Assembly (NCBI GenBank): GCA_030704615.1
Contig: CM060733.1
Coordinates: 33,790,001-33,854,000 of the forward strand
Direction of reading: 5' to 3'
DNA from: Takakia lepidozioides
Taxonomy: Eukaryota; Plantae; Bryophyta
Length of the DNA stretch: 64,000 nt
Shown here: positions 37,002 to 62,500 of the stretch, piece by piece
How the letters are laid out: every line of letters begins with the position of its first letter
Numbering within the stretch: position 1 is the first letter of the stretch
Made by a program: the position numbers and the translations under genes
The notes under the pieces: generated by a model
Seen by the model: only the letters and a program-made list of their open reading frames with translations
Told to the model about the DNA's origin: nothing
The model's database searches: none

Positions 37002-37304
37002 GGGGCAACGGAGGATGAAATATAAAAGTGTGACAGAAACGACCCAAAACAAAGGTCTTTTTTTCTTAGGTCTTTCATTTAGGTCACATTTATTCGGTTC
37101 GGTTTTGCATAAATTAATGGTCCAAAACAAAAGTCTTTCATTTTAGGTCTTTTTCTTTTTCTTTTTCTTTTTCTTTTTTTTTCTCGGCGGTTTCTTGGAT
37201 GTGAAATACTATTGGACCCGCTTCTCCGGAAGCTGGTCAATGTAGAATATAGAATATAGAAATATTTTTATATTACTACACTAAAAGCCATTCTCTATTC
37301 TATA

Positions 37305-37809: not shown

Positions 37810-38172
37810 CCAGCTGTGGCCGAGCTGCTCTTTATTGCCACCTCGTTATCCCCCTTCTCCCACTTTTGTTTAGGACGCAAGCTGAAGTTCTCAATCATCA
37901 ATACTACCCCTTTAACAAAACACTCTTCATGATTCTTCATAAGGCTGCCACTGATGGTGATTGTGACAGTCTGGATGTCATATTTCTCTATCACATTAGC
38001 ATGAAGGTAAGAAAATAAAGAAGACTTTATGCTAGTCTTCTCAAAGTTTCCATACCTACTCAAAACGATACACTCAAAGGTTGCATCTCTCACATTGTAA
38101 TCAAGATCATCTACAGTCCAAAGAGGTCGGTTGCGTCTCACAACTATTACACTATGCAAAATAGAAGATTGC
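37810..38172 (-). pseudogene. RPA-like OB-fold exon fragment (inverted copy on + strand at ~37543-37810)
   Basis: After a ttttcag acceptor: ATFECIVLSRYGNFEK..FSYLHANVIEKYDIQTVTITISGSLMKNHEECFVKGVVLMIENFSLRPKQKWEKGDNEVAI. This strand-strand-strand-helix-G-strand-NF pattern resembles RPA70/DUF223 OB folds (recognised by eye). Confidence 0.5.
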
Positions 38173-38477
38173 CTGAAAACAATGAAGACAAAGGAAAGAA
38201 ACAATAGCTAAACAATTTGTGCTTCAGACCTCTTCTATTTTATATAGAATAGAGAATGGCTTTTAGTGTAGTAATATAAAGATATCTATTTTATATATAT
38301 AGAATAGAGAATGGCTTTTAGTGTAGTAATATAAAGATATTAATATATTTATATAAAATAGATAATGGCTTTGAATGTAGTAATATAAAAATATTTATAT
38401 ATTTATATATTTATATTTCTATATTCTACATTCTTAAAGGGACCAGCTTCGAGAGAAGGGGGTCCAATAGTATTTAA

Positions 38478-39492
38478 CCCTTAAGTGTCCAGGCCCATTT
38501 TCACGACATGATGTGAAAAAATGACCCTGGCCCACTAAATCTTTTTTATCTCCCAAATTTCTAAGTCCCTATAAAAGTGACCGTTGAAGTTATTACCCAT
38601 CTACCCAAAATATGACCTCAAAAAATTGCAGCTGTATCCAATTGCCAAATTAGAAGATTATAATATGCAGATGTGCCCCAAACAGAATCTTTCCTAAAAA
38701 TGAAGAGCGTAAAAAACCAAGAAATTTACCAAAATTGGGAAATGTTTTCCTTGGATGATATGAGAGTCTTGGGAATTGTGTACCTCACTTGATGTCACAC
38801 CTTCCCTGAAATTTTTGTTTGTTTCTGACTTTGTTTTGTGTGGGCTGCTTTGTACTCACAAATTGAGGGCTCTCAAAACCCAATTTGAAGCGGGCAGACC
38901 AAAATTTGAGCTTCAAAAATTAGCTAGGACACATCTACAGTCCAATTCTTAATCGCTCTGGTCCATGTCATCATTGCATGCAAATGTTGTTGTAGAAAAA
39001 AATTCAATCCAAGTGGGAAATGTTTTAGGCTATTTTCGGGCCCTGCCCGGTAATTCCCAGCCCAACCTACATTTTGGCCTGCAGCCCTACCGTATTTCCT
39101 ACTGTAGCCCTTATACCTAGTGGGTTGTGAGACCATTTCACCACTCCTTTGCCTCCGGTGGCTGTCGCACATTCATGGGGCTTTGGGATGTGTGTGGGCC
39201 CGCCGTTCTTAGGGTGGAAACCCTTCCCCTAGTCTGACTGTGGTTGCCATGTAAGCCACTCGGGTAAGATGATTCAGCAAAAATATGTCAAAAGAGCTGA
39301 GTTAGCCCCAAATTGGGGGGTCTTACTCCATGTATATATATTTTTTTGAAGTTTAGGCAATACCATTATGTGTAAGAGTTTTTTTCCTGTCTAATGAGCC
39401 TAATTTGACTCAAATCAGAGTTAACCCCAATAAGAACTGGATGGCTAAAGAAACCTAACCAACCCAAAACGGGTCGGTTTGACACTTAAGGG
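38478..39492. mobile_element. piggyBac-like non-autonomous element (family 1)
   Basis: TTAA at 38474-38477 and 39493-39496; perfect 12-bp TIR CCCTTAAGTGTC. Removing the element restores the match to the other palindrome arm (empty site tagtat-ttaa-catc vs tagtat-ttca-catc). Confidence 0.88.
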
Positions 39493-41803
39493 TTAACATC
39501 TGAAAAACCGCCGAGAAGGAAAAAAAGAAAGACCTAAAATGAAAGACTTTTGTTTTGGACCATTGATATTCGGCAAAGTGTGGAGCAATCTTATGAAACC
39601 TCATGCACCCACAGCAGAAATAGGCATGGGCCGGCCATAACTTCAGTGAGGAAAACTGAAAGTCTATTTGGGCTAAGTAGCATTTGGCTTAAAAATAAAG
39701 CAACAAATGCATGGAATACTTGAATGTCCTATTCTATTGTAATTACTTGTAAAGTGATTAACATAATCTATAAGTTTAAATGCTAAGTAAATAGGTTTGA
39801 AATACTCAAGAGAGAGAGTCATCGTGAGTTCTGCTGGTTCTGATAAAGAGTCACCAAGGGATGATGGAAGTGGAATGATCTAGTTTGCAGCCTCACCAGT
39901 GCGAGCCCTTGCCTTTGACAAATGTGATTAATACATAGCATGAGGTTGGGTAGCAAGTAAGCAAGCTCATGCTTCCGTGCGCGTGCTCAGTGACCACAAG
40001 CCACGCAAAGGTGGGGCATAAGGAATTTCCCGTTAGCGCCATCTCCATCAACATTTTTCGTTGATTAATAATTCCATGTTTAATCATGTGCAAGTGACAC
40101 TCGTAGCAATTAGTAATATGCGAAACTAGACACAATTTATTCTGTTTCGCCCGCGAAAGCGTGGGTATGACCTACTGCAATAAACACGTAACAATTCGGT
40201 AGCGCAATAAAACAACCTCATGTCGTCCGAAAGATTTTAAATCTTTAAATCCTTAAAGCTCTAGCCTGGAGGATTTTTGGGATCCCAAATTTGGGCCCCA
40301 ACCGTCAAGTTGACTGTCAACCTGGCAGATAATGTACTCAATGCAAAGTGGGCCGTGTGCTAGCCTAAAAATCTTGCCAAAAAGTCCACCGGTTTCAGGC
40401 AAGATTTATTTTCAACATAAATGATGATCTACACTTGTTGTTTGCTTGAACCTCATAAATTTCTAGGAGCATGATCAGCAGTAGGGTTTTTTGACATTCT
40501 ATTTTCAAAATAGCGCGGCCGCCAATTTCGGACGGATCGCCTGTCCCCAGCAGTGCATTCTCATACTTCAAAATAGTGACCCTCACCAGAGTTCGTCCCA
40601 CTTCCACACTATCTACGACACACGCTTGGAGAGTGACATTCTCCATCACAACAGGATCCGCTGCCCATGACAACAACTCCGAAATGGACGGGGAGTCTCT
40701 TCTTGAACGGCCTGAGTTGGCGGGGCCCGCAGTCAGCAATCTGCCACCTCAACCTCGCGCCTCACCATATGCCTCACTAAAATAGTGATAAAATGTCAGT
40801 TTAGTGAGCGACTGTTGGTCATGGTCTAAGCACCTCCCTTTTTATGCCACGGAGTTGCAAAGATCTCACCAAAGGCATTTCCAAAATTGACAAATTTTAT
40901 GTGTTTTGTGTGCATGGAGGTCTCCATTTTCAAGCTTTCAGCTATGGAGTCTTCCTTTGCCCTGTGAGCAGGGGGGCCCCGCGCATCCAAAAAGTGCTTG
41001 GATCCTCCACTGCCATCTTCACACTTGTCCACTGCTTACACGCAGTCCCACATTCTCATTGACTGTTGCACCATTCACTCTTTAATTTGTATGAACTTTA
41101 GAGACGGCCTTTCTCTAGAGAGGTAAGCAAGCGCGGTCAAATATGTTCGACATATTTCCCATAATGTTTGCACCGGTTTTCATGTGAATGAATGGCCTTG
41201 GTCGGGCCACGGGTGTGCCAGACATATGGACGGTACGAGGTGGCTTCGCTTGCCCGTGTTTTGGATTACTGGGACGGTTCGCGGATGTGCTCGATGTGCC
41301 ATGGCCTTCATCATTACGGGGAAATTGTTACTTGGCGCGATTCATTTTCAACCTATCAAATTGAAAAGCCGTGGAAAAAATATCTCTGGAGCTGCTGCGA
41401 AGTTCTTGGTAGGAATGCTACAAATGCTGCAGATTTGAACAGCATTTGTCAGGGGAATGTGTGCTTTGAGGTCTCCAACTCGTATCTTGCAAGCTTTGAA
41501 ATCAAGTGTTCATGTGTATTAGAATACGATTTGTAGTTGATATTTTTTGTGTACTGAAGCTTATTTGGAACAACGAGTGACCGGAAGGAGTGCTTCCATG
41601 TATTAGAGAGTGATTGTTATCTGGCCAATTCTTGTTTGCAGCATCTGGGAAAGCGTTGCACGTGCGTTTTCGCAATCTCCACATTCGAACCTCGGTTTAC
41701 CGAACTCGATTGTTAATTTCTTTTTCTGCAAATAGAGCAGTTCAAACGGTGTTGGTAAAAGATTCGTACTGAGTACACTCTTGGACTCTATATAGCGGCG
41801 GTC

Positions 41804-43292
41804 ATGACGAAGGTGCTGGATGACAACTATTTGGCCATCACTGCCATAGTCACTGTATGTTGTACTCCCCCGCCTAGATCTTTACATTTTTTCTTGATCT
41901 TTTTATCGCTCGCGAGCAATGCAGATGCTGTTTCCGAGTTGAAGAGCGACACTGGGGTTGGACGAATTTTGGTGTACATGCACGTAGATGGCTTAGTGAA
42001 CAGACTTTGAGCTGAGGCTTTCTGTGTATGGGTGGACTAAATTGCTTCTGGTTTGCTTATCCCAAGGGGGCCATTCGAACGTAAAATTTGGAAGAAAGAT
42101 AGGAGTAAAGCTTAGTCTTTGATGACGTTATAGCTCTAGTAATTTGGCGTCAAGAAATCAAAGTGTTTAACGTGGCGTAATCTTGCAAGTATCTCGGCAA
42201 ATAAGCCCGATGCCATGTGGAAGTCCAATGTGCATAAAGACTTTGTAATATGTAAACATTTTCTTGTGCCAAAAGATTTGGCGCATTAATTTTGATTTAG
42301 TTATGTGAACTCAAACTGCTATAATGAGCCCGATGTGCAATGCACCCCACATTGCTGCTACTTGTATTCTATGCCTGTCATTCGGGTGTGGTTGTTAGGC
42401 ACAGTGGCAATGAGCCCTGCATTACAGCACAATGTGTAGTCCTATTCATTTTTTCTGTGTGGGATTGTGTTGTGATTGGGTTGGTTTGTTTTTTATTTGG
42501 AAGCTTTCATCATGATATGATTGTGAATGGATGTAGCTGACCTGGGGCTGTGATGGATTGCAGCTGCTGTACCAGTTCACTTTCTTCATTATTGCTGCCA
42601 CATGCCGGTTTGACAAGGTTACCGATTTTGCAGGTAAGTTTTGCTGTTGCCTCAGTGCTTCTTTGCCTGACTTTGACCTTCATTTTGAAGTTCAGGTGGA
42701 ATCTTACCACCTAATCATATAGCGGAATATCTAATCAGGGTAAACCAAAGATTAAGATGCTTCTGCAGTTGAAGATGTTCTTCACAAGTGTGGGTAACAA
42801 GACTGGTGCCTGGGGGGGGCAGGTGGCACTAACTTCGTGATTCTTGCATTGCTCACATTCCTCCTCAAAGGCTCCTGGCACTTCCGTCAAGTACATTACT
42901 CTTACCTCCTATAGAACTCAGTTTTTCATCTCTTTGACCTCTACTTGGGATGTTTTCATTCTATTCCTCTTCTTCTCTTGTCTTCTCAAAGGTTGCTTCT
43001 TGTTTCACCCTATATTCTCTTTGCTTGGAATGTGTTTTTTTGCCCAAAGCTTCCTGCGGATGTTGTAAGGTTTCTCTCCTTTCTTCTTCTCTCTTCTTTA
43101 ATTGAAAATGATGAATCTAGAGAGATATTGCAGCCATTTGTTGGCACAACATCTCAAACCTGAAACGGTCAAAATGATCACCTCCACTTGCTGGATATGA
43201 AGGAAAGGCTGTGTGTTGTTTGCAGATAGTGCTCACCACATTTGTGATCGTGTGGGGGATTCGTTTGGCCATCTTCCTGCTCCTTAGGTACA

Positions 43293-43324
<32 letters not shown>

Positions 43325-46019
43325 GACATGAGAAAGTTATTTTCCCCAGGGCCCTGGTGGCCCTCTGTGGACGTTATAAAGCTACATTGTTTCTTATTTC
43401 TTTTTCTCCCTCTCTCTTGCAAACAAGTCTGTTTCGCCCAAACTGGGCATGGGGTCTATGAGTACATCTCTTGCGAGCAAGCTTACTTCTCTAAAACTTT
43501 TGCTTTTGTAGCGCTTATTTTGATGAATTTTTGTGTCTTATAGACCAGTAGTAATACATCTGCTAAAGGGATAATGAATACATTGTTGAGACATGAGTCT
43601 ATTTATTTTGTATCATATGTGGAAATGAGAGTATTTAAATAATTAATTGGAGCAGATGTGGGACAGAAATCGTTACAGCAGTAGTGTTACCCCACAAGAT
43701 GTTTTGTAGTACAAGCTCCAATTTTCTCACAACTTGGCCAATAGGCATTCCTCTCACGTCTTCAAGCACAGGTAAACGATTAATTGTAATCATAATGCAA
43801 GTGTGTGTATTCTGAAGGAATGTGGTGTGCTGCCAAAAGCAGGATACTGGCATGGGGTGAAGACAAGCGCTTCGATGACAAGCGAGACAATCTGGTGAAG
43901 TTTGCAGCATTTTGGCTCATACAGGTGTGTGCTATTTCTTCTTATCCTCCCATTTGTCTCTATTCCAGAAGTGGTGATAGGTGATGTACCTCCTTCTGAG
44001 GTATACGTCAGAGATCAGCTGGGCCCAAGTCATGACTGGATTCCATGTTGTTTGAAAGACAAGTTCCAAATTGAAACAGGGGAGTATGTAGTATCTTGAG
44101 TACTACCCGTATCATTAGCCATCTTCTAAGATGACTACTGTAACAACTCATGCACATACGTCAAGGCGAATGCATCAATCTGTAGTTGGTAATTATTTCT
44201 CTGACTAACCAACTCTTTCCATATTTGAGTTGTCAAGAAAAGGAAGTAACTATGGGTAAGGGGATCTTCATGCATACAGTACACTTGCTCATTGTGCATT
44301 GATGACGGTAGCTCGCACATGAGGTCGTTATGATTGACTCACATGATGGTGTCATTTCAGATGTGATATTGTTGTGATCAAAATCTGCTTGATGTTGGCT
44401 GATGTAGGCAGTGTGGGTTTGGACTGTCAGCCTGCCTGTGACAGTAGCTAATGCCAGCAATCACCAGCCGGGTGTACGAGTGGCGGATGTAGTGGGCTGG
44501 GTTCTGTGGGCAATGGGTTTGTCCATTGAAGCTATTGCAGATCAGCAGAAGCTTAACACGAAGAAAGATCCGAGAACCAAGAGCCGATGGTGTGATGTCG
44601 GTGTGTGGAATTGGTCAAGGCATCCTAATTATTTTGGGGAGGTAAAGTTCACGGACCCACAGGATTTATCGTTGCCTCAAAGGAGAGGCATCTTGACTCT
44701 GTTGAATATTCTAGTTCCATTGCCGGTGACCAGTTGCAGGTTTTAATGTTGTCAATAAAGTGGTGATGTGAATATCTCCTTTTTTCAGATTTTCTGATCT
44801 GTCATGAAAACAAGTCTGTGGACCACAATCTAAATGCATTATAGCTTTGTCAGCACACAATCACCCCACACCATTTGGTTTTTGATGTGGCTGAGAGCAC
44901 TTTGAGGGCAAATCCTCTGCAAACTCAGAAGTTTGACACAACACCCGTGCTGTTAACAGTACGTTCTTGGATGATACCTAGGCATGCATCATCTGGTGGC
45001 ATTTGCAGTATTGGAAAGTTTGCTGATTTCGTAGAAACATGCATCAGGCAAGTAAACATGAACATGTTCATGCCTGGCAGATTTTATTATGGTGGGGAGT
45101 ATTTGTCGCTGCCACGCCGGCCCTACAAGGTGGTCAGTGGGCTGTCATCGCTGGCCCCATCTTTATCACAGTGCTTCTCCTTTTTGTCAGTGGAATGCCC
45201 TTGCTTGAGGTATCACTGCCCTTCCTCCGTCCACTTCCCCCTCTCCACATTAGAGACTCAGTAGAGGTTTAGAGAGTATGTTGTTTGTGCTGGGGCTGGT
45301 TGTGGGGACCTGTGTGTTGTGTTATCTGCTACTGACAAGCACTCTCAACTTCCTGTGGACATTATAACGTGTCGTAGTTGCATTTTTCTTTCTCTTACCA
45401 TGCACACACCCACATAAACTCTTTGCAATTGGGCATCCACACGCTATCAGGCCTGAATGATTCAAATTTTCTTTACGTGTGTACCCTCACATGCAAGTAG
45501 GTGAATGTCCTTATTTTGGTTTCCTTGATAGTGATGGCTCATGTCTGGGATGCAGGCATCTGCTGATAAAAAACATGGTAGCAACTTGGAGTATCGAAAT
45601 TACAAGAACAGAACAAGGTAATAGATCAGCCCATGCTTTAATGTGTCTTGCTTGCCTTATCCCAACGGACTGAAGGACCTTTTCTTAGTTGGGAAACCTT
45701 GTTTTCTCTCTCCAGAATTAATTCACAAGACAGTGGGTGTACCTTTCTCTGGTTGCTTATGAAATGTACTTATAAGACTTTGTTGGCCGTAGCCTCTGGT
45801 TGCTTGTGTGATAGCAATAACTACAAAGTATTAGTTTTTCACATGTTGTCAGCATTGTACATTGTGTGCAGCCCTTTGATCCCTCTGCCTCCTGCCTTGT
45901 ATGGGAGCCTACCAAGTTGGGTGAAGTTAGCATTCCTGTTCGAGTTGCCCTTGTACAACACGACACAGGGCGCTGGTGAGCAGCAGTTGCATCCTCAAGA
46001 CTCATCTGAGAGTGTCTGA
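41804..46019 (+). CDS. DUF1295 family membrane protein (3-oxo-5-alpha-steroid 4-dehydrogenase-like), 9 exons, ~301 aa
   Basis: Exons 41804-41854, 42564-42633, 42823-42890, 43226-43287, 43843-43924, 44408-44641, 45081-45209, 45556-45617, 45872-46019 (906 nt). Motifs FDKVTDFAGGTNF, WGIRLAIFLL, WGEDKRFD, EAIADQQK, WNWSRHPNYFGEILLWWG, SGMPLLE, TSPLIPLPP. Confidence 0.94.
43293..43320. repeat. (CT)14 microsatellite
   Basis: Seen directly, 5 nt after the intron-4 donor of the DUF1295 gene. Confidence 0.95.
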
Positions 46020-47888
46020 CCATCATGCTCATTTAGTCATTGCAGACTACGGCATGAAACTCAATCTACGTCTTTTCTTACTCACTTCATTCAATCTTTG
46101 ATTCAATTTATATAGTACAGCGTGTGCCCATTCAGTTTTTTCCATCTGCTGACTGATGTGAGACTGAATCTGACTAGAGCCCTTCTTGTTGCCATGAGCG
46201 GTCATCTTTGCAAGTGGCTAGGCTCTTGGCCTTATAATAAAGCAGAATTTGACTTGGCAGGTTAATGCAGGAGGTTGTCTGATGAAGCCCTCGATCCTCA
46301 TCATGGTTGCTCCAAGTGAGATAATGTTGATGGTGACCCCTCAATGTGTGAATGTGTGCACTTCTGTATGTAATCAGCATTTTCTTGTCATAACGAGTAT
46401 CCCGTCCAAGTGGAAAGCAGAACATCAAGTATAGGGGGGAGCTGTTATTCCATCCCCCCATATTAGTAAGACAAGTTGCCAACCAGCATGATTGCTCTAC
46501 ACTCATGACAGCTAGCAAAGTAGAGCATACATGGGTAATACACTGTTCTCTTCTTCATTTCAGGCAGATGGTTTCATGACCTGGTTATAACTGTGCATCT
46601 GCAAGCGGTTGACTGGCATCCGTCATCAATCCGCAGTTGAGGGGGCTGTCTGACTGGCCAGGAGAGTATCGTGCCTCCACTCAAGGTTGAACATTCAGGC
46701 CAGCGCAGATGGGAACCATAGCCACCCACCGCAAACAACACCACTACCTTCACTGCAAGAATTCCAAAGCTGCCTCTCTGCCTGAATTCATCATCCTCTC
46801 AAGGTCTTCCTTTTCATAAACTCCTGTTCGAGGCGAGTTTGGCATAGCACGGAGCTCTCGACGTAAGTGGGATGGTGGGGTCAGTTGTATCGCATCGTGA
46901 TACCGGTCTATTTCTAGGAAGCAAGAATATTGTGCAGACAGGTAAGGCGATGTCGGCACGCAAAATGTCCCGACAAAACGAAGCTAAACACAAAACTTAC
47001 CTGAACTTGTTTGCAGTGGGTGAGGCCGTGAGGACCTCTGAAGGACGCCTCTGAATTTTACGACGTGGCCACACAAAACTCAGAGGTCAGCACTATACTT
47101 AAATGTAAGCTGTCGGCAGGGAGTATACCTTTGAACACATGCAAGAGAAACAACGTCTCATTAGTACATTCTCTTGGGGACCATTGGCTTGCTTAGTACT
47201 AAGACAACTGGCTTGCTTAGTTGTAAGATTGGATGGAGTATGGGTGGATATGAGTGTCTCTATCCGGAATGTAACGCCAGATAGGGAATCAGCTTCAATG
47301 GAGTGGTATACCTGTCTCTCTAGTCAAAGTTAAGGGTCATTTACAAGTAGCATTGAGACATTCAATTTTGGTTTCAGTTTTGTTTAACTCTCTCCCTTCT
47401 TGCCGATGGTTTGTAGGTTAGTAAATCCACTAACTCTCCAGTGTTTTTCCAATAAAATCAGCTGCCATTGTCATTGCCCACCCACCCACTGGAAACCTCT
47501 AGATCATCTGCACACACACAGAAACAGAGGTGGACGAATGCAGAAAAAAATGGTTGAACAACAGAATGTTGTGTTTTACAGAAACTATCTCAAATATACC
47601 GGGACCAATGTGTGATATAAAGTGTACCCCCCTGCAATCTAAGCCTGCACTTCTACTAGAGTGCATGGCTTATGTTCTGAGGTATCTCTTGACCTTCCTC
47701 AATTCAATTATCGCTTACAATATGACCTCGTCGTCGTAACAGCACCCACTCGTGCTGTTGCCTCATCCAAGAATGTCTCCACTCAATGTACAAATGTCTG
47801 CTAAGCAGATCATTGGAATAATGTATAGACCTCAAAATAATGGGCTCAACTGTTCTTGATAACTACACAAACTACAGAAAGTAAACTT

Positions 47889-50800
47889 TCAAAGACCCAG
47901 AGGAGAATTGGAAGGTTGTGAATCTGTGGATAGATCGATGATGTTGGTGGTGACAGAAATCACGCTTGACAACACAGCCAATATCACCATCACCCATGCC
48001 TCCCACTTATCTCTTGAGGATGCCATACCTGGGTTATCTCTGCACCCACACAGACAGATCATTGTTAGTCCCCTACCCATGAGCAGTCAAATTGTGGGGA
48101 GAAGGAGATGGAATAGAAGATAAATTCACAGCCACCTAGCGCTTACACAGCGGCCAGTGCTCCAGCGTTGCAGAATTCTTGTAGTCTGATATCAGGCGCT
48201 CAAAGAATGCACAGTTTGCCAAAGCAGTGCGATTACCTGAGAACTATCATTGCAGGGAAGATGAAGCCAAGGCAGACGGTGGCAGTAGCTCCCGTGAATT
48301 GGAAAGCAGCCCAGATGTTGGGCACCAGTGTTGAGCCAAAGAAAATGACTCCCACCAGGACCCCTGTGATGAGGAGGAAACGCTGCGTGTCTTGCGCTAG
48401 TGGTGGGAATCTTGGGAAAAGGAGGGCATCCAAATTCAGGCGCAATGAGAAATGTAAGAGTGGGAACACCAACATAATGTGCACTGCGTAGCTGATCCGT
48501 ATTATGATGGTGAGCACGTGAGAATAGGGCACTCCCAGATCGACATCAAAGTTGGAAAGGATATCATCGCTGATGGTATCACCAAAGAGAAGGTAACCAA
48601 AAAAAGCGGTGCACAGATATATGGAGCTGCATAGTACCAAGGAAGAGCGCACTACTCGCAGCATCTTGGCCTCGGAGGTCTCAGAAGGTCCCTCCAACTC
48701 GTTGGCAATAGGATGCACTGCAGCCCACAATTTTCCGATTTTGATTTAAGTTGTGACCAGCATTGTTATGAAGCAAACCTATCAGCTACACACAAGTTTG
48801 CCTGTCTCTTCACAGCTTGAGGACACGGTAAGCATTTGCAGAATCCAAGCAGACACCCTGCATGTTGCCTTACATCATGACAATTACAGTCTCTAAAGGG
48901 ATACCCTGAGACAGGTATTTGTTGAAACAAAAAAATCTCTCTTTCTCTCTGGCACTTGCTCACTCCAGTAAAATTCTGTGCATGTAGGCTATGACCCTCT
49001 TTCCGAAAAAAGAATCGCTGCAACTACCCCCAACTGGACCACATACAGCAGAAGACCCCCACATGCATCAAAGCCTATATGACTTTTGAGTGGCCAACTA
49101 CATGCAGACTGGACCAACCAACTAAAGAGCTCAAAATAGAATTGACATTTCCTGCAAATGGTGCATGTGACATACTCCCTGAGCCGGTTTTGGAATTTCA
49201 GCGCACCAGGGTGTGTGTGGGTGTGAGAGAAAGAGGATATACTCGAGAAGGTGTTTGAAGTTTTCTTCTTATTGTTGTTTCCATGCTTTGCTTTTGGCTG
49301 TTGGCCATCTCGAATGTTGAAGCTTGGGCATTTCCGAGGCCTTTGCCGTTTTTTGTTGCCCTCACAGCTTATAGCCCTTTGTAGCTTGCCTAGGCTTGTG
49401 AAGGGGTTCCAATCAGCTTGGTAAAGTGTTATATGAAGAGGTTTTCAAATGAAGTTGATCTGGGGTCTGTCGGCGAGCCAGGGACAGAAATAGAAAGGGT
49501 ACAAGGGACAGAAATAGCCCAACAAGGAAATATAGGAGGACGGGAAGATACTTCACAATGAGAGAGACAGAAAGAGACCATTGTGCTGACAGATGTAGGC
49601 TGTCACCATGACAGGGATCACAGTGAAGAGGCGCCAAAAGGACCCTCCATCATGGACGTCTGGAGTCAGCCTGGGCATTGGTATTTGTCCAGCAAACAAT
49701 TTCTGAAGGGTCACCCCCACAGTGATCACCACAAATACCACAGCCAAAGCCACTGACAATGCTGATGTCCATTTCAATGAATCTGTCCCAATGCCAGCCA
49801 ACATACCACTTTCAACCATATCAACAATCTGCACGGAAGCACACATGAGCCTTGGCTAGTCAGATTTGATGGACATTCCTCCAGTGAACGGTTGGATGTT
49901 TGGCTCTATCATAGGTTTTCCTGGTTATTAGTATTATTTGGATTAGTAGATGTATCAACCCAACAATGCTCAAACTGACGAAGAGGTGGAGACATTCCTA
50001 GAACAGTTTGCTCATGTACCAACGCAAGATCAACATTCTAGAGGTAGGCAGACACACTGCCTTCATTCCCAACCACCTGTTTACTATGGGTTCCTCAATT
50101 TCAGCCATAAGTTCATCGTCCACAACAGATCTGTAGGATTGTCTTATTCAGGCAGCAGTTGAAGTTGACCATTTAGGTCCATTGTCCACATGGCCGCATA
50201 GTAGAGAAAGAGGAAAGAAATGTGTTACATCCCTGGAGGCCCAAATGACCTAGAACTACTTTGGCACACTGATAGAATAGAATCAAAGGACCACAGTGAG
50301 AGAGAGAGAGAGAGAGAGAGACATTCTACCACATTTAAGAAGGGATATAAAGAAGGCTTACCAACATGCCTAAATAGCACGAGGGGGAGGAGGATGAAGA
50401 AAGTGGTGGCAAACAGAACGACAACGCGATGGTTCCACCAGGTTGGACCGCCTGCCCATTCCTCAAAGACACCCGTGTGATGGGCCTCTGCCCCCCCACT
50501 TCCTGATAGCACATCACCTGCCAAATTCACCAACAGATTTCCTTACAAGGAAGATATGTCCTCTTAGAAAAAATTAGCAATCCCCTACGATATATAAGGA
50601 AGACTCAAGTTGGCTCTATCTTCAATTGGAGGACAATAACATGTCACATAGCAAGCTAAGAAAGAATTAACCAGGTAATTACTGTCCATACAATCAGGTC
50701 AACCAACTTGGTACAAATCTTAGAAACATCTAGTGCGCCAAATCAAATCCTACATATTACCACAAGACCAGTCTTGTAAGAAGAAAATAGCAGGTGCTAC

Positions 50801-51811
50801 ATTCTTCTTAAGTACTTCTGAATGTAATGTTTTCTCAACTTTCCAAGTTCAACTCTCCTGCTGGAGTCCAATCCAACCTTTTCTTTGGAAATGATTTAAC
50901 ATTGCTCAAAGGCGCAGTTGGCCACCAGCACTCTAGCTTTAATACTGTTCCAAGTGAGAGCACTCCCCACAATGTCGTCTGTTAATCAATAAGTCTCTAA
51001 ATGGTAAAAGGAAGCTTAGGAACTCATATGAGCCCACATTACCAGATGAAGGATTATACTAGCTGCGCACAAGGTGAAGTAAAGAAAAATCGCGGTTTGG
51101 TTTTCAATCTTCCAGTATCCAAGAGAAGCCAACCGCAAGGAATGTTCTGATCTAATGCAGAATGCCAATACTTAGATTTTCAGAAAGGAGGAGGTATGGG
51201 GAATAAACCGAGCAATCACATTGGACAAAACTGGGCCCTAATCAATACCCATCAAGGAAAAATATGTACTCTGGCAACCATCCATCTTTGCCTTCCCTGC
51301 CTTCATTTATCCATCAGCCTGACACACAAATCTGTGCAACAAGTACCAATATGTACTGAGTGTTACCAATGATGATCATGTAGACAATAAGAACGCCGAA
51401 ATTATTGATGATGATGCAGAGCTGGAGCACCATGCGGCCCACCTCGCCGAATGCGTCAGCCATCAACCCACCATAGGATCGGGCCTTGCATGGTCTCGAA
51501 TACCTCAAAAGAATCTGGATGGAATTTTCACTGAGGAAGCCAATGACCACGATTGTAAGTAGACCTAGGGGCAAACCAAGCAACTTCATGGTGGCCGGTA
51601 AGGCCATGATGCCGGCACCCACGATGGTTGTCGACAGATTGAACACTGCACTCGGCACGGACGCCCCATGGTAATCCTCGTAGGCTTCTTCCAAATCCTG
51701 CCGCTTGGTCGGTAGCAGGGGCGTTCGATCATTCTGCGTTTCTGGTGACTCCAAACTACCTGAGGGCACCTGGTGTAGTTGCTCGTGCAGAGGCTCCAGC
51801 ACTGCTGCCAT
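47889..51811 (-). CDS. AVT6: Amino acid transporter, AAAP/Aa_trans family (AVT6-like), 5 exons, ~478 aa
   Basis: Exons 51367-51811, 50362-50517, 49579-49782, 48237-48717, 47889-48039 (1437 nt). Motifs AVFNLSTTIVGAGIMALPA, YMIIIGDVLSG, DSLKWTSALSV, VTAYICQHNVHPI, FGYLLFGD, FQFTGATA. Confidence 0.94.
50298..50321. repeat. (GA)12 microsatellite
   Basis: Seen directly in AVT6 intron 2. Confidence 0.95.
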
Positions 51812-52853
51812 CCCTACCCCAAGGCTAAGATTGCTCTTTTGCGTCTGATCCGGCTTATGGGTTGTGCATGTTTCTGCCCTTGTCTGTTCGCTTGCGTCTA
51901 ATCTGGGTTATGGGTTGCGTGTAGAGAGACAACAAGACGTCCCCTGTGGAGAAAGAAGCTGTTGCAAAGAGAAAGGAAACGAGGGACACAGAGCAGATCT
52001 TAATAGAGAGGTGCCGTATCTCGTCCCACAAAACAAAAAGTAAAAGCACTCTTTTTCCACCTGCCACTCACAGTCCTCTCTTACCCCACCCACCCCACTT
52101 ACTTACGGCTCCTCCACTGATTTTATTGAAGGTTTGCAGCCATGGCGGTGCAAACTGAGGAGACAAGTGCCAGGAGAGCAGCTAGTCGTATGAGAGCTCA
52201 GATCCTTCTCCTCATACGAGCACCTCGTGAGGAAAATCCTAGAGATTCTGCCATATTTTGACCCACCATACCTTCCAGCTTCTTTGGAACTGCCACCTCT
52301 ATTTGCACTGATGCAATTCGTCCATGCTAAGTATTGCTGTTTTTGGTTGGGACCCACCCAAATTGGTGGATTCCATTTCCACGAGATTCTCTCACAAAAC
52401 CTGCTGATTGACACGTTTTTTGAATATTTTTGGAAGGAAGGAAGGAAAGAGAAGGGGACAGCACTGTTCACGAAGCAGACATGTGCTACGTAGTGTGAAT
52501 GACTGGCAAGCGGCACGCCATTGACACACGATTGTGTCAACGTCACACACCACCGCATGCTTGTCCATTTATATCATCCCATATTTGGCGAATTCATCCA
52601 CTATTTATTTATTTTTTGGAGAATTTTGGCGATTTCATCCATGAAAAAACGGGGAATTTATGACAGAAATTCCGTTTTTATTAAAGGTCGAAAACTGGCG
52701 ATAAATCGCCAATAAACAGACACGCTTCTATCCAACTACATACTACCATTTTTGTTTTGTTTTTGAGAACAAGGGGACATTTTAATTTGACTAATAGATG
52801 TCCCATTCATTTAAAAAATAGTCATGAAAAACTAAAATATGTGTTCATTTTAA

Positions 52854-54439
52854 CCCTTAACTTCCTGCATGGTTCATTTTTTGACACCTAACAATTACTA
52901 CCCATGCTCAGTAAAATGAGGCTAACTACCTATCAGAAATCATCCAGAAAAATGGACCTTACACATAGGTACGCACCAATGTTGGGCGGTTATTTAATCT
53001 CGTCTCTAGTAACAGTTGGTTATCTATCCGGTTATATATATATATAACCGCAGGAGATGAAAATTTGAAATAACCGATCCCGTTAGGAACCGACAGAGTG
53101 TAGGCATACAAATAACCGGTCCCAATAGTAACCGGCAGAGACCAAAATTTTAAAAATTGATGTAGACAACCAGTTGGGTATTTTTTAAGTGCACGGTTAT
53201 GAAAAATTAAAATTAAAAAATGAGTGGTCTAATATATGAATATATATATGGGGTCTAATAACCTAAGGTTATGAGTGGTGGTTCTCAGGTGTGAGTCCTT
53301 GGCTAAATTTGTGAATGAGCTTGCCAGGCTTCATATTTTGAAGCACATTGAAACATTATGATGGGACATTGTATTTTGAAATCCCCATTGATGAGCCCCA
53401 TTCATTTAGTAATTTTAGATGCATGTGTATATCTAAAATATATCTACAGGCCTGCTCTATTGTACTAATGCAGGCTTGAAAATATATTTATGATTGATAC
53501 AAATTTCAGCTATAATTCTATATTACTTTTTAAGTAAATAAATAAATATACATAACCAGTTGTATAACCCTCAGTTATAGCAAAAATGTAACCGGATTTA
53601 TGGATACCCGGCCAAAAACACATGTCACTCTTAACCGCAACCGGAAGGTTATTAGAAAGTCAACAAACTGAAAGAACCGGCCTACTAGGTTATTTCAATA
53701 TTGAGTTCCAATGTAACCGCAATCTGAAAAATATAAATAACCGCCCAACACTGGTACGCACCTGGCGCCTGCATGCACTGAACTTGTTTCACCGTCAAAT
53801 ACGGTAGAGTATATGGTTTTAGAGAGGACGGATTATTTGTTTCTGTTTTTGAAAACATGGTTTTTTAGCCTTGACCAACTAATTTGAGAGGCTTTTAGAT
53901 TTTTGTGGAGTGTTTATTTTATTCCACAGATTCCTAATCTTTGGTAGGAATGCCATGTCCATGCAAAAAATGAGGGGCAAAAGTCAGGTTTAGTATGGGG
54001 GTGCTTTGTATGTGTTTATGGGGGGGTTCAAATTACCTTCATTACAAAGATTTGGCCTCCACAAGATGTTATGAAATATTGCTCAAATTCAAAATCCAGT
54101 GACTCTCTTCATACCTACACCTTGGTCCAAATTATGCCCACATCCAATGGTAGAAATTGACCCCCCAAGTGGCCTGAAATGTTGTCCAATCATCATTGGC
54201 CATGTACAAATCAACTCTGCGCGGCCTCCCTCCATGCAAGAGCATTTCTGACCCGCTGGGTTTTGCAAATTTGTGGACATGGAAGACTTTCTCCAAATGG
54301 CATGCTGCCAATTGGAGATGATTTGCCATGTTGTTAGGTCATTTATTGCTGAAGAAACGACCTAAAAATATTAAGATCTATAAAAGTTACGTTAATATGT
54401 TTTATGAAACCCGAAACGGGTTTCATAGGAAGTTAAGGG
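52854..54439. mobile_element. piggyBac-like non-autonomous element (family 2), carrying a nested hAT MITE
   Basis: TTAA at 52850-52853 and 54440-54443; perfect 13-bp TIR CCCTTAACTTCCT; subterminal palindrome cccgaaacggg at 54410-54420. Confidence 0.85.
52977..53753. mobile_element. hAT-type MITE, 777 bp
   Basis: TIRs caatgttgggcggttattta / taaataaccgcccaacactg; perfect 8-bp TSD gtacgcac (52969-52976, 53754-53761); many internal taaccg/cggtta subterminal motifs. Confidence 0.92.
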
Positions 54440-55005
54440 TTAAGTTACCAGTCATTTTGTGTTTGTTTAATGATGTTGCGTCGCTTTATGGTTTGTGTGG
54501 AAGGGTTATTTTTCCCTGTCACCTTTTAATTTGATCAACAAGGCGTCCGTCCCCTTTTATTATTTTAACTAAAAAGTCCTTCAAATAAAAATTCCTCCAA
54601 CTGGAAAAGAAAAGTTTATATTAAAGTTTGTTGGTCCTGCCCTTCACGTAGGGACTATGCATGAACTTGGAGTGCTACTTGACGTGGGTTGTTCCGTATT
54701 GAAACTTCTTGGGAACATATAGTTTGATTAAGATTCCCGTTTATTATTGGTTTTCTGTTCTTTATATACATTTGTTCTTGTATTTCGAAGAATGACATCT
54801 TAAATCATGGCTTATAAAAAAGATTGAAGTTGTAACACGTTGGAGAGTAAAATCATATAGATACAAAATCTTTATCCACGGGGTACATGTTCTCCTCGAT
54901 GCAACGTCGAAATCGAGTAAACCCAAATGCATCGTGGAAGTAATTTGGAGGTGCATAAAAATCACGTCGAATGAACACAGCACAACCAATGTCACATTAA
55001 ATTCT

Positions 55006-55032
<27 letters not shown>
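55006..55032. repeat. (TG)13 microsatellite
   Basis: Seen directly. Confidence 0.95.
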
Positions 55033-55039
<7 letters not shown>

Positions 55040-57129
55040 GTTGTTGTAGATATAGGGCCCACCCCTGAAAGGGGTTGTAGCCGCAAGGAGAAATGGCTCC
55101 TAGTTACGCCAGCTCTAACCGGGGTCTTCTCTCTCTTGTTGTAGACCCTTTACACCCTCCTCTTCATTGTAGCACTGTTGGATAGGGATCCCTGAACCCT
55201 CCCGTTGCATAGCTGTCGCAAGACATCTCTCTTGCACTCTATCTTGGCTATGCCTCTCTCTTGCTAACTCTCTTATCTAACTGCCACCAGCCAATGCCTC
55301 CAACTCCCCCACCCTCACACCCTGTAGCGTCATGACATTCTAGAAGATTTGTCACGTTAGCACTTGCATGCAGCCGCCATATGCAATTGTCACTTTTTAC
55401 TAGGCATGCAACAGCCATGTGGGGCCCGCATGCAATAGCCACCCTTTGGAGCGAAGTCGGAGAGCCCTCTTAGAAGTCCACCATGCTTTGGCTGTTTTGA
55501 TTTTTTGAACGACTTGGGGTACATTTGTTTCATAGAGACTTACTGGTACAATCGTCCGTGGGTACGAATGCCTTTGGAGGATCTGTTGTCCCAACCCTAA
55601 GACCCTACCTCTACAAACAACATAGTATATGCAATTAAGATAGTGACATTTCATTAGAGAGAACCCAATCTCGCTTGTCATGTCCAGAGCTACCATCCCC
55701 TCTTCATGCTCTTCCCATTCTCTCCTCCCATGACCCATTATTCAAAGGGGTTACTTGAGGATGTCAAATGAAATGATTTCATCATCTAGTGTTTTGCTAC
55801 ATTCTTATTCAAGAGATTATCCTAAGGTGTTACAATATATCCTAGACCTTATCATCTTAAAGGCCACAAACCGAAGACCGAGAAGTATTTGCTGGATTCT
55901 TGGTGGCAACATCTAGATCACTTAATGGAGGTACCAATTGCCTACCAAGACTGAAGGCAGGTAGGTGTAATGAATTTACAGATTGTCAAGAGAATTAGCT
56001 TGCATGATACTACACTTGGTAAAGTTCACGTAAACAAAGACTTGATAGGGTAGTCTATGATATACCCTCGAGGTCATAGTCCCTGTTCACTACAAATTGC
56101 CTGGATCCACTACAAGTATATCCGAAGCATAGCTAACGATTTCTAAGGACTCATGCTCAAGCAACAAAATCTAATTACAAGATGACATTGATAATAAACA
56201 AGAAGAATAAAATACACAAATGAACAATGAGAGAGGAAGTAAAAGGGGTGGAATACCTGATCCTTGGACATTATGCTACTCATGAAACCGGAAAACACGG
56301 TGCAAGCTTGGTTTAACGAAGCTTGGCAATTCATTAGTGCCCCCAAAGTGCCTGGGTCTCCCACCCAACACAGTTCACCACCGGGCTCATTAGGACCCTC
56401 CAATCCCACATTTGTTTCAACTTCAACTCTTACAGCAGAAGTTAAAACATCCATATTACACACCTAAATCACCGACCCTGCTCCAATATACCTCACGTTA
56501 GTACACACATGCATTATTTAAACCTCACCTACTGCCACTTTTTTGCGCAAATGGCACAAAAATCTAACCCAAGCATTAAGAACCTTAAAGACAAAACTAA
56601 CGGCACCCCTCTCCCAAAAAAATATCTACAAGCGCCATATCCATCCATCTTCCCTACCTTATCATAAACATCAATTCACATTAGTGCATACTCCATCAAA
56701 AATAGCTGCCGCCAGAGTCATTGTCCCAACATTCGATACAAGAGCTCCAGCTCAGCCAACAAAATCACACATGCATCATACACATCACCGAAGGCCACTC
56801 ATCTGGATAACTTATAATGAGTCACCCCTCTATATTGCAACTCCAAAAACTTCTACATGCAACTCAACACCAATAACTTGGAAATCGTGCTTGAACCAAT
56901 CACTCCACCACCAGGCTTTTCAAACGATCACAATGTCGGAGTCGTAGTCCTTGGCATTCAAGAACAACATGGATGCACTCCTACTTAGTGACTCGCTCCC
57001 CAAGGATACCGCGCAATCTCTGTCAGCCAAGTGCAAGATCACCTTATGTTTGTGAGTGCAAAGTGTAAGGATTAGTTTTGCACTTGTATGTGCCCATTAC
57101 CACTGGGCTACATGCTGGTTGTTGTACTT

Positions 57130-57310
57130 TAGCGACATCTAGCCCAGTGGTAAGGGCAAAAACCGCTTCACAAGTAAGTGGTTGTGGGTTCAACCCAGAT
57201 GTTGGATGTCATAAAGGTGTCCACCTTCCACCGAAAGGCACTAGCACTTTGGGGTCAAGTGACACCATAATTTACGCTGCTTCGGCAATGCGTCCACATT
57301 TATTTGTACT
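57130..57310 (+). mobile_element. tRNA-derived SINE (same family as 37305-37460)
   Basis: A-box tagcccagtgg at 57140, B-box ggttcaaccc at ~57187, shared body. An inverted 5' fragment (gtgcccattaccactgggcta) lies just upstream at ~57090-57110. Confidence 0.72.
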
Positions 57311-57955
57311 TAGCAAAGTAGAATGGGGCTTTGTTATGTAGCTTAAATTTTGTAGATACTTACTTGGAGCTACAGGGTGCTATCTGCACTAATTTTTAGG
57401 GTTTGGATGGTCAGAGTAAGTACTTGACAATCAAGAATTTTCAACTAGTGTTGTGCAATATTGATAACATGGCTCTTTATGGCTGTGATCTTTAGCATGC
57501 AGTCCCTTGAACATCCCCACTCTGGTGAAATCTTTACGACGCTCTCAACGTAAGAAGAGTTCCTGAGCATGCCATCCCAGCTTCTGCAAAGTTTTCCCAT
57601 ACAATGTCCCCACTGAACACACAGGCTCGAGCAACGAAAACGTGAGGGGTAGGGGAAATCCAGAGCTTCCTTTAATGCTGGCCCGCACTATAAGCAACAG
57701 CACGATTAGATATTTAAGTTACAAAATGAAGGGTTTGAGAAGGCTCCAAGGCGTTCCGTGATAGAAAGACTACAACAGCAGTATCCACGTAGTCTAGTTT
57801 CTAATGCTCTCGAAGCGAGTCTGGTTGTAAACTTCGTACAACTGTGGTAGGAGGATGGCCTTTGAGCTATCAGTATATCAACTACTAGGAATGAATAAAT
57901 TGTCTTAGTAAGCATCGTCCAGATCTTGGATGGATATGTAGGAAGTTTGTGATGG

Positions 57956-58718
57956 TTAGTGAGAGGCCGCAGTTTCAAGGTGCTTGAGATTTGCCCTATA
58001 GAAGTTGCTCATGAAAGTGGTTAGCTCCTCGTAAGTGGCGTTAGCGACTGGATTCACCTCGTATGACCAGTTCACCAGTGTGTTGCCTTCCCCTCCGTCT
58101 CGCATCTGTACACAGCATGTCGTTAAAGGGAAGGAGACTAGTTGAATATCTTCTACATTTACAGCATTTTAGTAGAAATACTACCGACAAGGTAGCTCAG
58201 TAGATGGAGCACAGAGCACACAAGCATACAGTGGAATTTATTCTACCTGCAGATGCATTCGTGATAATGTTAATCATAACTTCCAGGGGAAACGAAAAGC
58301 ATCTGTAACATATGCTATGAATGACAGACCTTCATAGAACCATTCAACAATTCGCCAAAAACTTGAAGTTAAGAGGAGGTTAAGAGGAGTCTGAAATTAC
58401 CTCGACATGGGAAATGTAGCCATGCAAACCCTGTTCGAACGCAAAGTGGTTATCCTCCATGGCGTATGACATGCAATGCCTCTCATTGTCGATGGTCAGC
58501 AGCCTTTCATACACCCAAAACTCTTGACTTTCAGCGAAGCGCAACAACCCTGGGCGACCATCCTCACCTCTCACCTTCTCACATTTAGTTACCCCTGGAG
58601 CCCACTTCTTTAAGCCGCAAAAATCAGACTGTATGGCCCATACTCTACTAAGGGGAGCAGCAAGATATTCCTGGACCGAGCCACGCCACTTGGCAGGTGG
58701 AGAAACCAACTCTGCCAT
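57956..58718 (-). CDS. Polyketide cyclase/dehydrase and lipid transport (SRPBCC, Polyketide_cyc2; lachrymatory-factor-synthase-like) protein, 2 exons, ~155 aa
   Basis: Exons 58401-58718 and 57956-58105. Motifs KWRGSV, APLSRVWAIQSDFCGLKKWAPGV, GEDGRPGLLR, WVYERLLTID, CMSY, TLVNWSYEVNPV and a C-terminal helix. Confidence 0.9.
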
Positions 58719-59385
58719 TGCTTAAATTCCTGCAAAGCTCCTTGCTTGTTTGCACTCGGACAAGATTATAACAGTCGAACAGCTCAGAATATGTAGCTGC
58801 GATACCCAGCACAGGATATGAATCTGAAATTAGAGTTGGTGCAATTTGTACGCAAAACAATGGCCTTACTTATAGTCTATGAATAATTTCTCCACAATAA
58901 CAGAAAGTCCTGGAGAAGCGAAGCCGAGATTGCAAACATCTGCTGCTGAAGGCCAGTGGCATCGCACGATGGACGAGACAAGAGACAAGACGATGGTGAA
59001 GCAGAAAGGGGAAAATAAACAACTTCTGAGGCAAAGGAGGCGAGTCAACCTGACGTCATTGACACTAGCAGTGCGCTAGATGTGGACCAACCCAGGATTG
59101 ACTGTGCACAGTCTAGTTTTGGGTGTGGGGTCCTTCCACAGAAAATCCATGAGATCTGCCTCTGTATGTACTATGTACCATCCAGCCTTTGACCCAAAAA
59201 CGCATGCAATTTTGACCTTGGATTCCGCCTCGCTCCTTCCGTCGCTGCTTCCCCACCAAGACAAGACGGAGAGACAATACTTAAGGGGACCAAAATATCT
59301 CCTCTCTACACAATGTCCCAATAAGTTTACCATATGTGAGGCCTAAATGTGAGCCTGGTCTCTGCCCTAGCGAGGAATCCTCTGC

Positions 59386-59419
59386 AATTTCCTTAGAAAC
59401 GGAAGTTTCTAAGGAAATT
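59386..59419. repeat. Perfect 15-bp inverted repeat with 4-nt loop
   Basis: aatttccttagaaac-ggaa-gtttctaaggaaatt. Confidence 0.9.
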
Positions 59420-59562
59420 CTGGCATGTCAGATCAAGCTCTGTACGCTTGGAAATGGGTCCCGCTGTTGGTGACAGGACCACAGGACCACATTCATTAGA
59501 GGGAAGATAATAGGAATGAGGTAAGAACTAAGAACTTAATGCACTCCTGCCACCTTGATACA

Positions 59563-62500
59563 ATTTTTATTTTTATTTATCTATTTAAATAAAGAAGAAC
59601 GGAGGCCTCTTAGCTTTATATATTAGGACATAGAACGTCAGAGAAGTACAAGAGGAAAAAATAACCTCTACCAGGAAGACAATGCTTCGTGACCAAGTTT
59701 AACCCTTAAACGCCCAGTAGCCCGTTTCGGGCTTTTGGGTTTAAGAAAATCTGAATAACTTTTTGCATTCTCCATGGAATTGTGTGAAAAAAAAATATAG
59801 TGTTCTTGGGCACCTGGCACACCAAGATTCATTGCCCGATTGCCTCGGATCTGCCAAGTTGCAAAGAGGTCTCATCACGCAAAGGGGGGTTTCACGATTT
59901 TATAAAGGTAATTCTAGTTGTTTCATTCTTCACACGTGTGTGAGAGAGGGAGAGAAACATGGGATTTTCCCATGTTTGACCAAGTGGCAACATCACATGC
60001 ATTGACCAAATTGGATACTTTTTGGCTTGTTGGATGAGGGATCTCAAGAGGATGAAACCCTGCTAATTTCGCCTCAATCCCATTTGATCCCGTCACTCAA
60101 ATCTTAAAAAATTACCAAAAATGGATATGTTTCTCAAAAGGGCTCCATTAATGGGGCCCACATTCAACGGTGGCATTTTGTGGATCTGGGGCTGATTGGC
60201 CTCAAATTCGGCAGGTGGATGCAGGAGGAAGGTATGCACCTAATGTGCGGTCAAGTTCTTTAAAAAGTTAATTTTCTGAAAGATACACCTTTTTTTCACT
60301 TAAGGGGTCATGTTTTCTGAAAAAGTCAAACTATGGCACTGGGCGTTTAAGGGTTAAGAGAAGGGGGAGAAGAGAGGTCTTAGATCAAGGATAATCCAAA
60401 AACCAGGAGCCATAAACCAGTAAGAGTAGAGCCTGACAGCAGTGCCCCCAACCATCAAGATGCTTGAAGAGCCCTAGTGTGAGGCCCTCCCTTGGCCACT
60501 ACAAAACTGGAGAGCAGCTGAGCAGCTGGGCAAGGCCCAAACATCTCCTTATATCTACTATGCAGCAGCGTCAAGCAAAACCATGAGAACAACGAGGAAA
60601 TACCACAGAGAGCCACTCAGCAGACCTGCTGACCAATTTAGGCTACCAAAAGAGAGCGCCTTCGCTTTGCCCATCTTAAAAGATTTACGGTGCCTCCAAT
60701 TGACTTCTGGCTCATCCCCACCAAGGGGGGAGCGCATGGAGCTAAGAGACTCCTCCGGGAAGTTGTCATTCCATTAAACCCTCGATTCTGATAATTTGGT
60801 GCAGATCTTTCCTTGTTTGCCCCAAGATTGATCAAACTCTTGGAGGAGTTTATTACGCCTCCTCTCCCCACATCTGGAAAGAGCTGAACCCAGCACACCG
60901 CAAGCTTTCCGAGCCTCAGTCATGATGTCTGAATGAGTCATAAACAGTACAGACCTTACTGAGAACGGCTTACCTGAAAAAATCAGATCACATCTGGCCT
61001 TCCACACCCAAACCGGACATTTGGACCACAAATGACTTCCCTGAAAATTTAAAAGCAAAACAGCTATATCATTCCGAGGCACAAGGCTCCAAAGAGAGTA
61101 GAAAGTAGTCACAAAATGCCAAGCATGGCTGGCCCTTGGGCAAGAAACAAAGCAATGCTCCATGGATTCTGTATCTCCCCACGAATAAGAGGCACAGACT
61201 GGGGAAGAGTCAGGAAAGCAAGTTTTCAGAGGAAGGATCCGATTCACTAGAAACTTTGGCTGCACGGTCTTTACGCCAAACATCATTCCAAACACATTTC
61301 CAAGTAGATGGGCAGGATTGCAGGTGTCTCCACTTCGCTGTCCATTTAAGATCCATGGAAACCATCGGATTTAGCATAGAGTAACCCAACTTTATAGTAT
61401 AAGCAAAAAAAAAAGATCTAAGCCTATCCTTCCACCTCCACTCCCCGGGGTCGAATTGTAACAAGGCCAAAGGAGCCTGCAAGAACCACAAGAAGAACGG
61501 ATTTGTATGACAACCATTATCAGCGGAAGGATTCGCAACACCTTTGGCCATGCAAATGACCCGAATTGCAAAGCAAGCATCCTCTAAGACCAGGGCAGGT
61601 CTTGGAGAGTGAAGAATGCCTGAGTCCAAAACCCGGAAACACCAACCAGAACGGGATAATGCAAAGAAGGCTGCTGTAGAAGAACCGTTATCAAAGGATA
61701 ACCAGGCTGGGAGACCCCTTCTGTTGGCCGGGAAGGATGCAAAAGAAACCCAAGAAGATGGGAGATTTGCAGTCACTACATCCCATCCAGCCCTGATTCT
61801 TCTACGAGAGAGGGAGTCTTCAGCCACCTCCGCATGGATAAGAGAACCATTTTCCCATAAATGGAAAAAACTAGAGATACCCACCGCATCCCAAGCAGCC
61901 CACCTGGCTGAGCACTTAATCAACGTCTCTGACTCTCGATTGCCATTCCCAAACAGCAGTTGTCTGAGCACCTCCTCTGTAATGGTAGGTTTGGATTGCG
62001 TAAGATGACCCCTCATAGAGAACCAAGCCTGCCATATTGATCTCCAAGCTTGTGAGCCCGAAAGAGGCACGGAGTTTGAGGAGCCTCCCTGCACAACCCA
62101 TCTCAGGGAAGGAGGTCAAATTGAGGAAGGAGCTGGACGAGCCTTGAGGAGATGACCAAACCAGGAGACTCCATGGTGAAAGAGAATGAGTGAACACCGT
62201 TGGGATCCACTTGGCTAGAATGGCCGCAATCTGTGATTTAGGGTCTATAATACCAAGGCCACCATTACTTTTTTTTTGGGTCAACTGCTTCCAGCTCACA
62301 TGCGCTCTACGAGTCTGGCTAGGAGAGGAGGCCCCCCAAATGAAGTTCCGCATCATAGCTTTCATCTTTTTTATGAAGGCCTCGCTTGGCAACCAAACTG
62401 AAGAGCCAAACCAGCTAGAAGCCAACACAACTTGGTTAACAATAATAGCTTTGCCCACTATAGAGAGGTGTGCCGAGCACCGGTAGGCTAGCTTCTTCTT

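Follow-up and report, generated by a model that had tools for sequence, protein, structure and literature searches.

In a 64-kb stretch of DNA from Takakia lepidozioides (contig CM060733.1, positions 33,790,001 to 33,854,000; referred to below as the window), we analysed three elements, designated E1, E2 and E3, each of which is flanked by TTAA and ends in CCCTTAA. Judged by the structure of their ends, they are very probably piggyBac-type DNA transposons of the non-autonomous, cut-and-paste kind and represent three families in a moss-lineage land plant. Among footprint-free transposon tools piggyBac is the principal one, and little has been described of where it occurs naturally in plants. 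All results on E1–E3 refer to the window, and the elements are oriented such that the end carrying the subterminal palindrome described below is the left end.

Three TTAA-flanked elements with CCCTTAA tips

Direct reading of the sequence showed that each element is built as TTAA / CCCTTAA... ...TTAAGGG / TTAA. The 11-mer TTAACCCTTAA is present in exactly six exact copies, which form three inward-facing pairs (38474/39496, 52850/54443 and 59699/60357). When up to one mismatch was allowed, the pattern was found at seven sites, compared with 1.19 expected, and none of 100 shuffles reached this number; the relaxed search added a single unrelated site to the six exact copies. A generic search for TTAAC...GTTAA pairs with a perfect terminal inverted repeat (TIR) of at least 9 bp returned E1, E2 and E3 alone. 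The perfect TIRs comprise 12 bp in E1, 13 bp in E2 and 16 bp in E3. As BLAST and the TIR search both showed, they have CCCTTAA in common and diverge thereafter. An initial annotation of this DNA had described three TTAA-flanked elements with such TIRs, and their coordinates were confirmed in the sequence. All six tips contain a second TTAA at bp 4–7, giving the arrangement TTAA-CCC-TTAA.

The interiors of the elements showed no mutual similarity by low-stringency BLAST. The sole positionally consistent interior matches were 14-mers located at bp 19–32 (bp 20–33 in E2) from one end. Open reading frames (ORFs) inside E1–E3 gave no Pfam match at E ≤ 0.1, and no coding remnants were detected, in agreement with the earlier description of the interiors as non-coding and unalignable. 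No further copies or fragments of the elements were found in the window, where each family has one copy. [quoted passage not shown] MITEs are also small and present in high copy number, and with sizes of 651 bp (E3), 801 bp (E2 prior to a later insertion) and 1015 bp (E1), it is a loose label.

The E1 empty site defines a 4-bp duplication

TTAA is a palindrome, and therefore the flanks by themselves are compatible with a duplication of TTAA, with a longer TIR and with a duplication of TA. E1 is located in the right arm of an inverted repeat of approximately 2.4 kb (37113–39567), the left arm of which is uninterrupted and provides a paralogous empty site. While the filled arm reads TTAA-E1-TTAA, the empty arm has TTCA (37202–37205, reverse strand), a difference of a single base; elsewhere the arms are 80–91 % alike. 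The reverse complement of 37100–37260 was aligned with the joined flanks of E1, and the alignment was gapless at the junction only with exactly one TTAA. The alignment scores were 165 with one TTAA, 156 with both and 152 with none. In addition, a single 99-bp BLAST match with 86 % identity spans the junction.

Because the empty arm aligns without a gap when one TTAA is kept, the insertion consists of E1 plus one TTAA, and the boundary of the element is CCC...GGG. The target-site duplication of E1 is exactly 4 bp, and the outer TTAA is the one that was used. An element boundary at the inner TTAA (bp 4–7) is ruled out by the empty site. Collapse of the empty site to a single TTAA, a check that had been set beforehand, was thus observed for E1, which is one of the three elements. 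For E2 and E3, no paralogous empty sites were found in the window by BLAST. The empty arm fits either an arm that never received E1 or one from which the element was precisely excised. The arms of the inverted repeat are 80–95 % complementary over the whole repeat, which also contains internal 54-bp tandem units at 38232–38394.

Two differentiated ends

According to the initial annotation, the motif CCC(G/A)AAACGGG lies at one end only and gives the elements an orientation. This proved correct. The window contains three copies of the motif, one per element (39463, 54410 and, on the reverse strand, 59721), and in each element it begins at bp 19–20 from one tip only. E1, E2 and E3 each have a palindrome centred on bp 24–25 from the tip, with the one-sided motif, read as CCCGTTTYGGG, at its core (Table 1). 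In E3, the predicted fold adds outer pairs to the palindrome, out to bp 3–43. The right ends contain no copy of it, and a second copy with up to two mismatches was not found near either end of E1–E3.

Comparison of the first 35 bp across the three families revealed that bp 1–7 and the palindrome core are conserved, whereas bp 8–18 are completely different. As these two segments alone are conserved within the first 35 bp, they are likely to be protein contacts. Such islands in DNA that is otherwise unalignable would indicate that a binding protein has constrained the sequence, and not shared descent alone.

The right ends are marked by a motif of their own. GAAAA(A/C)ATGACCC is common to E1 (bp 38–50 from the tip) and E3 (bp 37–49) with 12 of 13 positions identical, and sharing at this level was equalled in 2 of 5000 shuffles. 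A weaker, inverted version is present in E2. Within each element the motif occurs at no other place. Hence, E1–E3 share two differentiated ends, a left end with the palindrome and a right end with the A-rich ...ATGACCC motif. Neither the palindrome around the one-sided motif nor the right-end motif had been recognized in the initial annotation, which had also missed the E1 empty site and an insert nested in E2.

This insert is a 775-bp element with TIRs, flanked by a perfect 10-bp direct duplication, GGTACGCACC (52968–52977 and 53753–53762). By the length of this duplication, it is classified as Mutator-like. It is a later insertion that does not belong to the piggyBac-type element proper, and without it E2 measures about 801 bp. 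The interior of the nested element is crowded with AACCG-type short repeats.

Assignment to piggyBac and weighing of alternatives

In a survey of 157 piggyBac-like elements, TTAA was duplicated, the TIRs were 12–19 bp long (mean 14 ± 2), the first six bases followed C[C/A/T][C/A/T][T/G/A][T/A/G][T/G/A], and subterminal repeats were frequent and sometimes palindromic (PMC5381638). E1–E3 conform to this description. Exact TTAA was found on six of six flanks, with the E1 empty site collapsing to one 4-bp site; all three TIRs (12, 13 and 16 bp) begin with CCCTTA; and each element is asymmetric in its subterminal repeats, with the palindrome next to the left TIR at one end only and a different motif at the other. 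The left end of the Trichoplusia ni element consists of a 13-bp TIR, 3 bp and a 19-bp internal repeat, and at its right end the gap is 31 bp (PMC5381638). In cryo-EM structures, a dimer of the C-terminal cysteine-rich domains sits on a palindromic repeat at bp 17–33 of one left end, and the minor groove is narrowed around bp 25 (PMC7351741). The match between E1–E3 and insect piggyBac in the distance of the palindrome from the tip is the strongest new argument for a piggyBac assignment.

On this basis, E1–E3 would be acted on in trans by a piggyBac transposase whose gene lies at another place in the genome. The catalytic dimer of this transposase would grip both CCC tips together with the flanking TTAA, and a dimer of C-terminal cysteine-rich domains would occupy the left-end palindrome, as in the insect transpososome. 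Excision would proceed via TTAA hairpins, so that a single TTAA is restored and the element is pasted into another TTAA. One transposase lineage could mobilize all three families.

Several observations weigh against the assignment. Among the ORFs of the window scanned by Pfam, which did not cover every ORF shorter than 100 aa, there was no transposase with E1–E3 ends and none of the DDE_Tnp_1_7 type (DDD plus cysteine-rich domain) that an autonomous piggyBac partner would encode. The strict signature (TTAACCCTTAA, 9–14 nt, CCCGTTTYGGG) had no match in metagenome contigs, and a relaxed signature gave 18 matches there, all of them bacterial-looking and without a partner end. The signature scan of viral contigs yielded one match, which was not preceded by TTAA. 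In prokaryotic genome contigs 88 matches were obtained, which we read as chance given the size of the collection; one that was inspected lies on a bacterial-looking, low-coverage contig of 333 bp and has neither a flanking TTAA nor a partner end. Neither a TTAAC...GTTAA TIR pair nor a piggyBac gene was found in three related bryophyte loci (67 kb). Furthermore, insect piggyBac has the internal repeat at both ends, whereas in E1–E3 the palindrome is missing from the right end. Finally, the window contains a single copy per family, and mobility as a family is something that we infer.

An origin of E1–E3 from another TTAA-targeting superfamily, be it Kolobok, a Sola group or an undescribed one that resembles piggyBac at the ends only, is improbable. 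No transposase is linked to the E1–E3 ends, and Kolobok likewise makes TTAA-specific 4-bp duplications, but its termini are 5′-RR / YY-3′ (PMC9587614). Kolobok itself was rejected on this point, since the termini of E1–E3 are CCC...GGG with the boundary taken from the E1 empty site. Moreover, TIR length, the first six bases and the palindrome at bp 25 all fit piggyBac. Sola was set aside on weak grounds, namely that the testable features fit piggyBac; no accessible text with Sola target sites and termini was found.

The length of the E1 duplication bears on further candidates. Mutator duplications comprise 8–11 bp and CACTA duplications 3 bp, unlike the exact 4 bp at TTAA in E1, and it is very improbable that a transposase of either type mobilizes these piggyBac-like ends. 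PIF/Harbinger elements (Tourist) duplicate a 3-bp TWA and were discarded as the duplication is 4 bp; a 3-bp reading gives TTA at one flank and TAA at the opposite one. Tc1/mariner elements (Stowaway) duplicate TA and were likewise discarded, as the best alignment score was obtained with a 4-bp duplication and three of three elements have the outer T and A. We also consider it unlikely that E1–E3 lack a present transposition system, either as old relics that no longer move or as inverted repeats that arose by chance. Each element is present in a single copy in the window and E2 was struck by a later insertion, as might be expected of relics, but chance is excluded by the shuffles (0 of 100), and great age is unlikely given that none of the six TTAA and none of the three TIRs has lost its perfect sequence. 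Relic status would alter only the mobility of the elements and not their identity.

If E1–E3 are piggyBac-type transposons, a broader picture can be proposed tentatively, with the balance of evidence falling slightly short of favouring it. The elements, three families within 22 kb, might belong to a recently active, diversified piggyBac radiation in a moss lineage, in whose non-autonomous families no more than two islands of protein contact, the CCCTTAA tip and the palindrome at bp 25, have been retained. Transpososome geometry as solved for insect piggyBac might then have been conserved over approximately a billion years of host divergence, and the moss elements might constitute a plant-native, footprint-free TTAA system with defined minimal ends.

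Host and genomic surroundings

The large RPAP1 exon (908 codons) showed 50–53 % identity to proteins from ENA and JGI, 46 % to Ceratodon purpureus and 40 % to Physcomitrium patens. Beyond mosses, identities were 33 % (Taxus), 28 % (Trapa) and 28 % (Selaginella). Because of these identities, the host is placed as a moss-side land plant distant from the sequenced model mosses; judged by this protein, it branches deeply within the moss lineage. The land-plant host assumed in the initial annotation is borne out, the highest identities among named relatives being those to mosses. In a protein search with the START-domain exon, only a lycophyte protein matched (39 % identity).

E2 is located 1043 bp upstream of the start codon (51811) of the amino-acid transporter gene and E3 985 bp upstream of that of the START gene (58718). 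The position of both elements about 1 kb upstream of reverse-strand host genes possibly reflects a promoter-proximal insertion preference or a regulatory effect.

Other repeats are present in the window. A 146-bp unit occurs in two tandem copies (18023–18314) that are 98 % identical. On the reverse strand, ORFs for gypsy-type integrase, reverse transcriptase and RNase H were found at 20693–28710 and 24787–25480. Direct repeats in the gypsy region are spaced about 505 bp apart, resemble long terminal repeats and are rich in CCACTAGTCC units. Two further reverse-strand ORFs for reverse transcriptase, at 6763–8151 (462 aa) and 61916–63514 (532 aa), matched RVT_1 only and probably belong to non-LTR (non-long terminal repeat) retroelements.

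Table 1. Positions of E1–E3, their subterminal motifs and neighbouring features in the window
Feature	Position	Strand	Details and evidence
Paralogous empty site for E1	37170..37265	-	Other arm of the 37113-39567 palindrome
E1, left target-site duplication TTAA	38474..38477	.	Direct reading, pattern count, empty-site alignment
E1, 1015 bp, non-coding	38478..39492	-	12-bp perfect TIR CCCTTAAGTGTC; left end at 39492
E1, right-end motif	38515..38527	+	GAAAAAATGACCC, bp 38-50 from tip; motif comparison
E1, left-end palindrome	39457..39479	-	bp 14-36, centre bp 25; 9-bp stem, one G-T, core CCCGTTTTGGG, fold z -2.15
E1, right target-site duplication TTAA	39493..39496	.	Direct reading, pattern count, empty-site alignment
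E2, left target-site duplication TTAA	52850..52853	.	Direct reading, pattern count
E2, 1586 bp, non-coding	52854..54439	-	13-bp perfect TIR CCCTTAACTTCCT; left end at 54439
E2, weaker right-end motif	52871..52883	-	CAAAAAATGAACC, 11/13, inverted, bp 18-30 from tip; weaker evidence
Nested TIR element inside E2, 775 bp	52978..53752	.	TIR A[A/G]TGTTGGGCGGTTATTTA
E2, left-end palindrome	54403..54427	-	bp 13-37, centre bp 25; perfect 11-bp stem, 3-nt loop, TATGAAACCCG TTT CGGGTTTCATA, fold z -5.44
E2, right target-site duplication TTAA	54440..54443	.	Direct reading, pattern count
E3, left target-site duplication TTAA	59699..59702	.	Direct reading, pattern count
E3, 651 bp, non-coding	59703..60353	+	16-bp perfect TIR CCCTTAAACGCCCAGT; left end at 59703
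E3, left-end palindrome	59719..59733	+	bp 17-31, centre bp 24; AGCCCG TTT CGGGCT, perfect 6-bp stem, fold z -3.39
E3, right-end motif	60305..60317	-	GAAAACATGACCC, bp 37-49 from tip; motif comparison
E3, right target-site duplication TTAA	60354..60357	.	Direct reading, pattern count
RPAP1/MINIYO gene	9579-15549	-	908-codon exon; Pfam
DUF1295 gene	about 43-45 kb	+	Pfam
Amino-acid transporter gene	48.2-51.9 kb	-	Pfam; ATG at 51811
START/Polyketide_cyc2 gene, first exon	58383-58718	-	Pfam; ATG at 58718

Comparison with known systems

In a 2017 survey, piggyBac was recorded in protozoa, red algae, fungi and metazoans only (PMC5381638). A mining study from 2025 describes a piggyBac 'group 4' from fungi, land plants and algae (PMC13461360). 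The initial interpretation of the elements as piggyBac-like stands with respect to their structure, which is TTAA-specific, CCC-ended, end-asymmetric and non-autonomous, whereas its starting point, the prevailing view that land plants lack piggyBac, is outdated. That piggyBac occurs in a land plant is not new, although it became known only recently. What the window contributes is the proof from a clean empty site of its own and an end architecture with two conserved islands. 'Group 4' is the only published group we found that includes land plants, and it is set beside E1–E3 by host range alone; it is likely to be the home of the partner transposase. A literature search for piggyBac in bryophytes or for the CCCTTAA tip returned nothing specific.

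The closest structural counterparts are piggyBac (IFP2) of T. ni and the piggyBac-like elements, which share with E1–E3 the 4-bp duplication of TTAA and TIRs of 12–16 bp starting with CCC. T. ni piggyBac likewise has differentiated ends and a palindromic internal repeat inside of the left TIR near bp 25 (PMC7351741, PMC5381638). In contrast to it, E1–E3 reside in a plant of the moss lineage, are non-coding and have a second TTAA at bp 4–7 of the tip. Their palindrome (core CCCGTTTYGGG) is unrelated in sequence to the insect one and is confined to one end, while the other end carries a different motif. Kolobok, which agrees with E1–E3 in its TTAA-specific 4-bp duplication, differs in its termini, 5′-RR/YY-3′ compared with CC/GG (PMC9587614).

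The conserved 7-bp tip and the palindrome at bp 24–25 predict which bases are contacted by the transposase. The shared geometry suggests that the arrangement of the left end, as resolved by cryo-EM for the insect element, is a general one. With their short, well-defined ends, native plant elements would supply plant-adapted material for insertional mutagenesis and removable transgenes.

MITEs derived from piggyBac in animals, such as human MER85 and MER75 and those of insects, are short and non-coding, have TTAA flanks and CCC...GGG ends, and depend on a transposase supplied in trans; MITEs of piggyBac type are listed in surveys of insect MITEs. E1–E3 resemble them in being short, non-coding and TTAA-flanked with CCC...GGG ends. 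They differ from the animal MITEs in that they are found in a plant and in that tips and subterminal motifs are all that the three families have in common.

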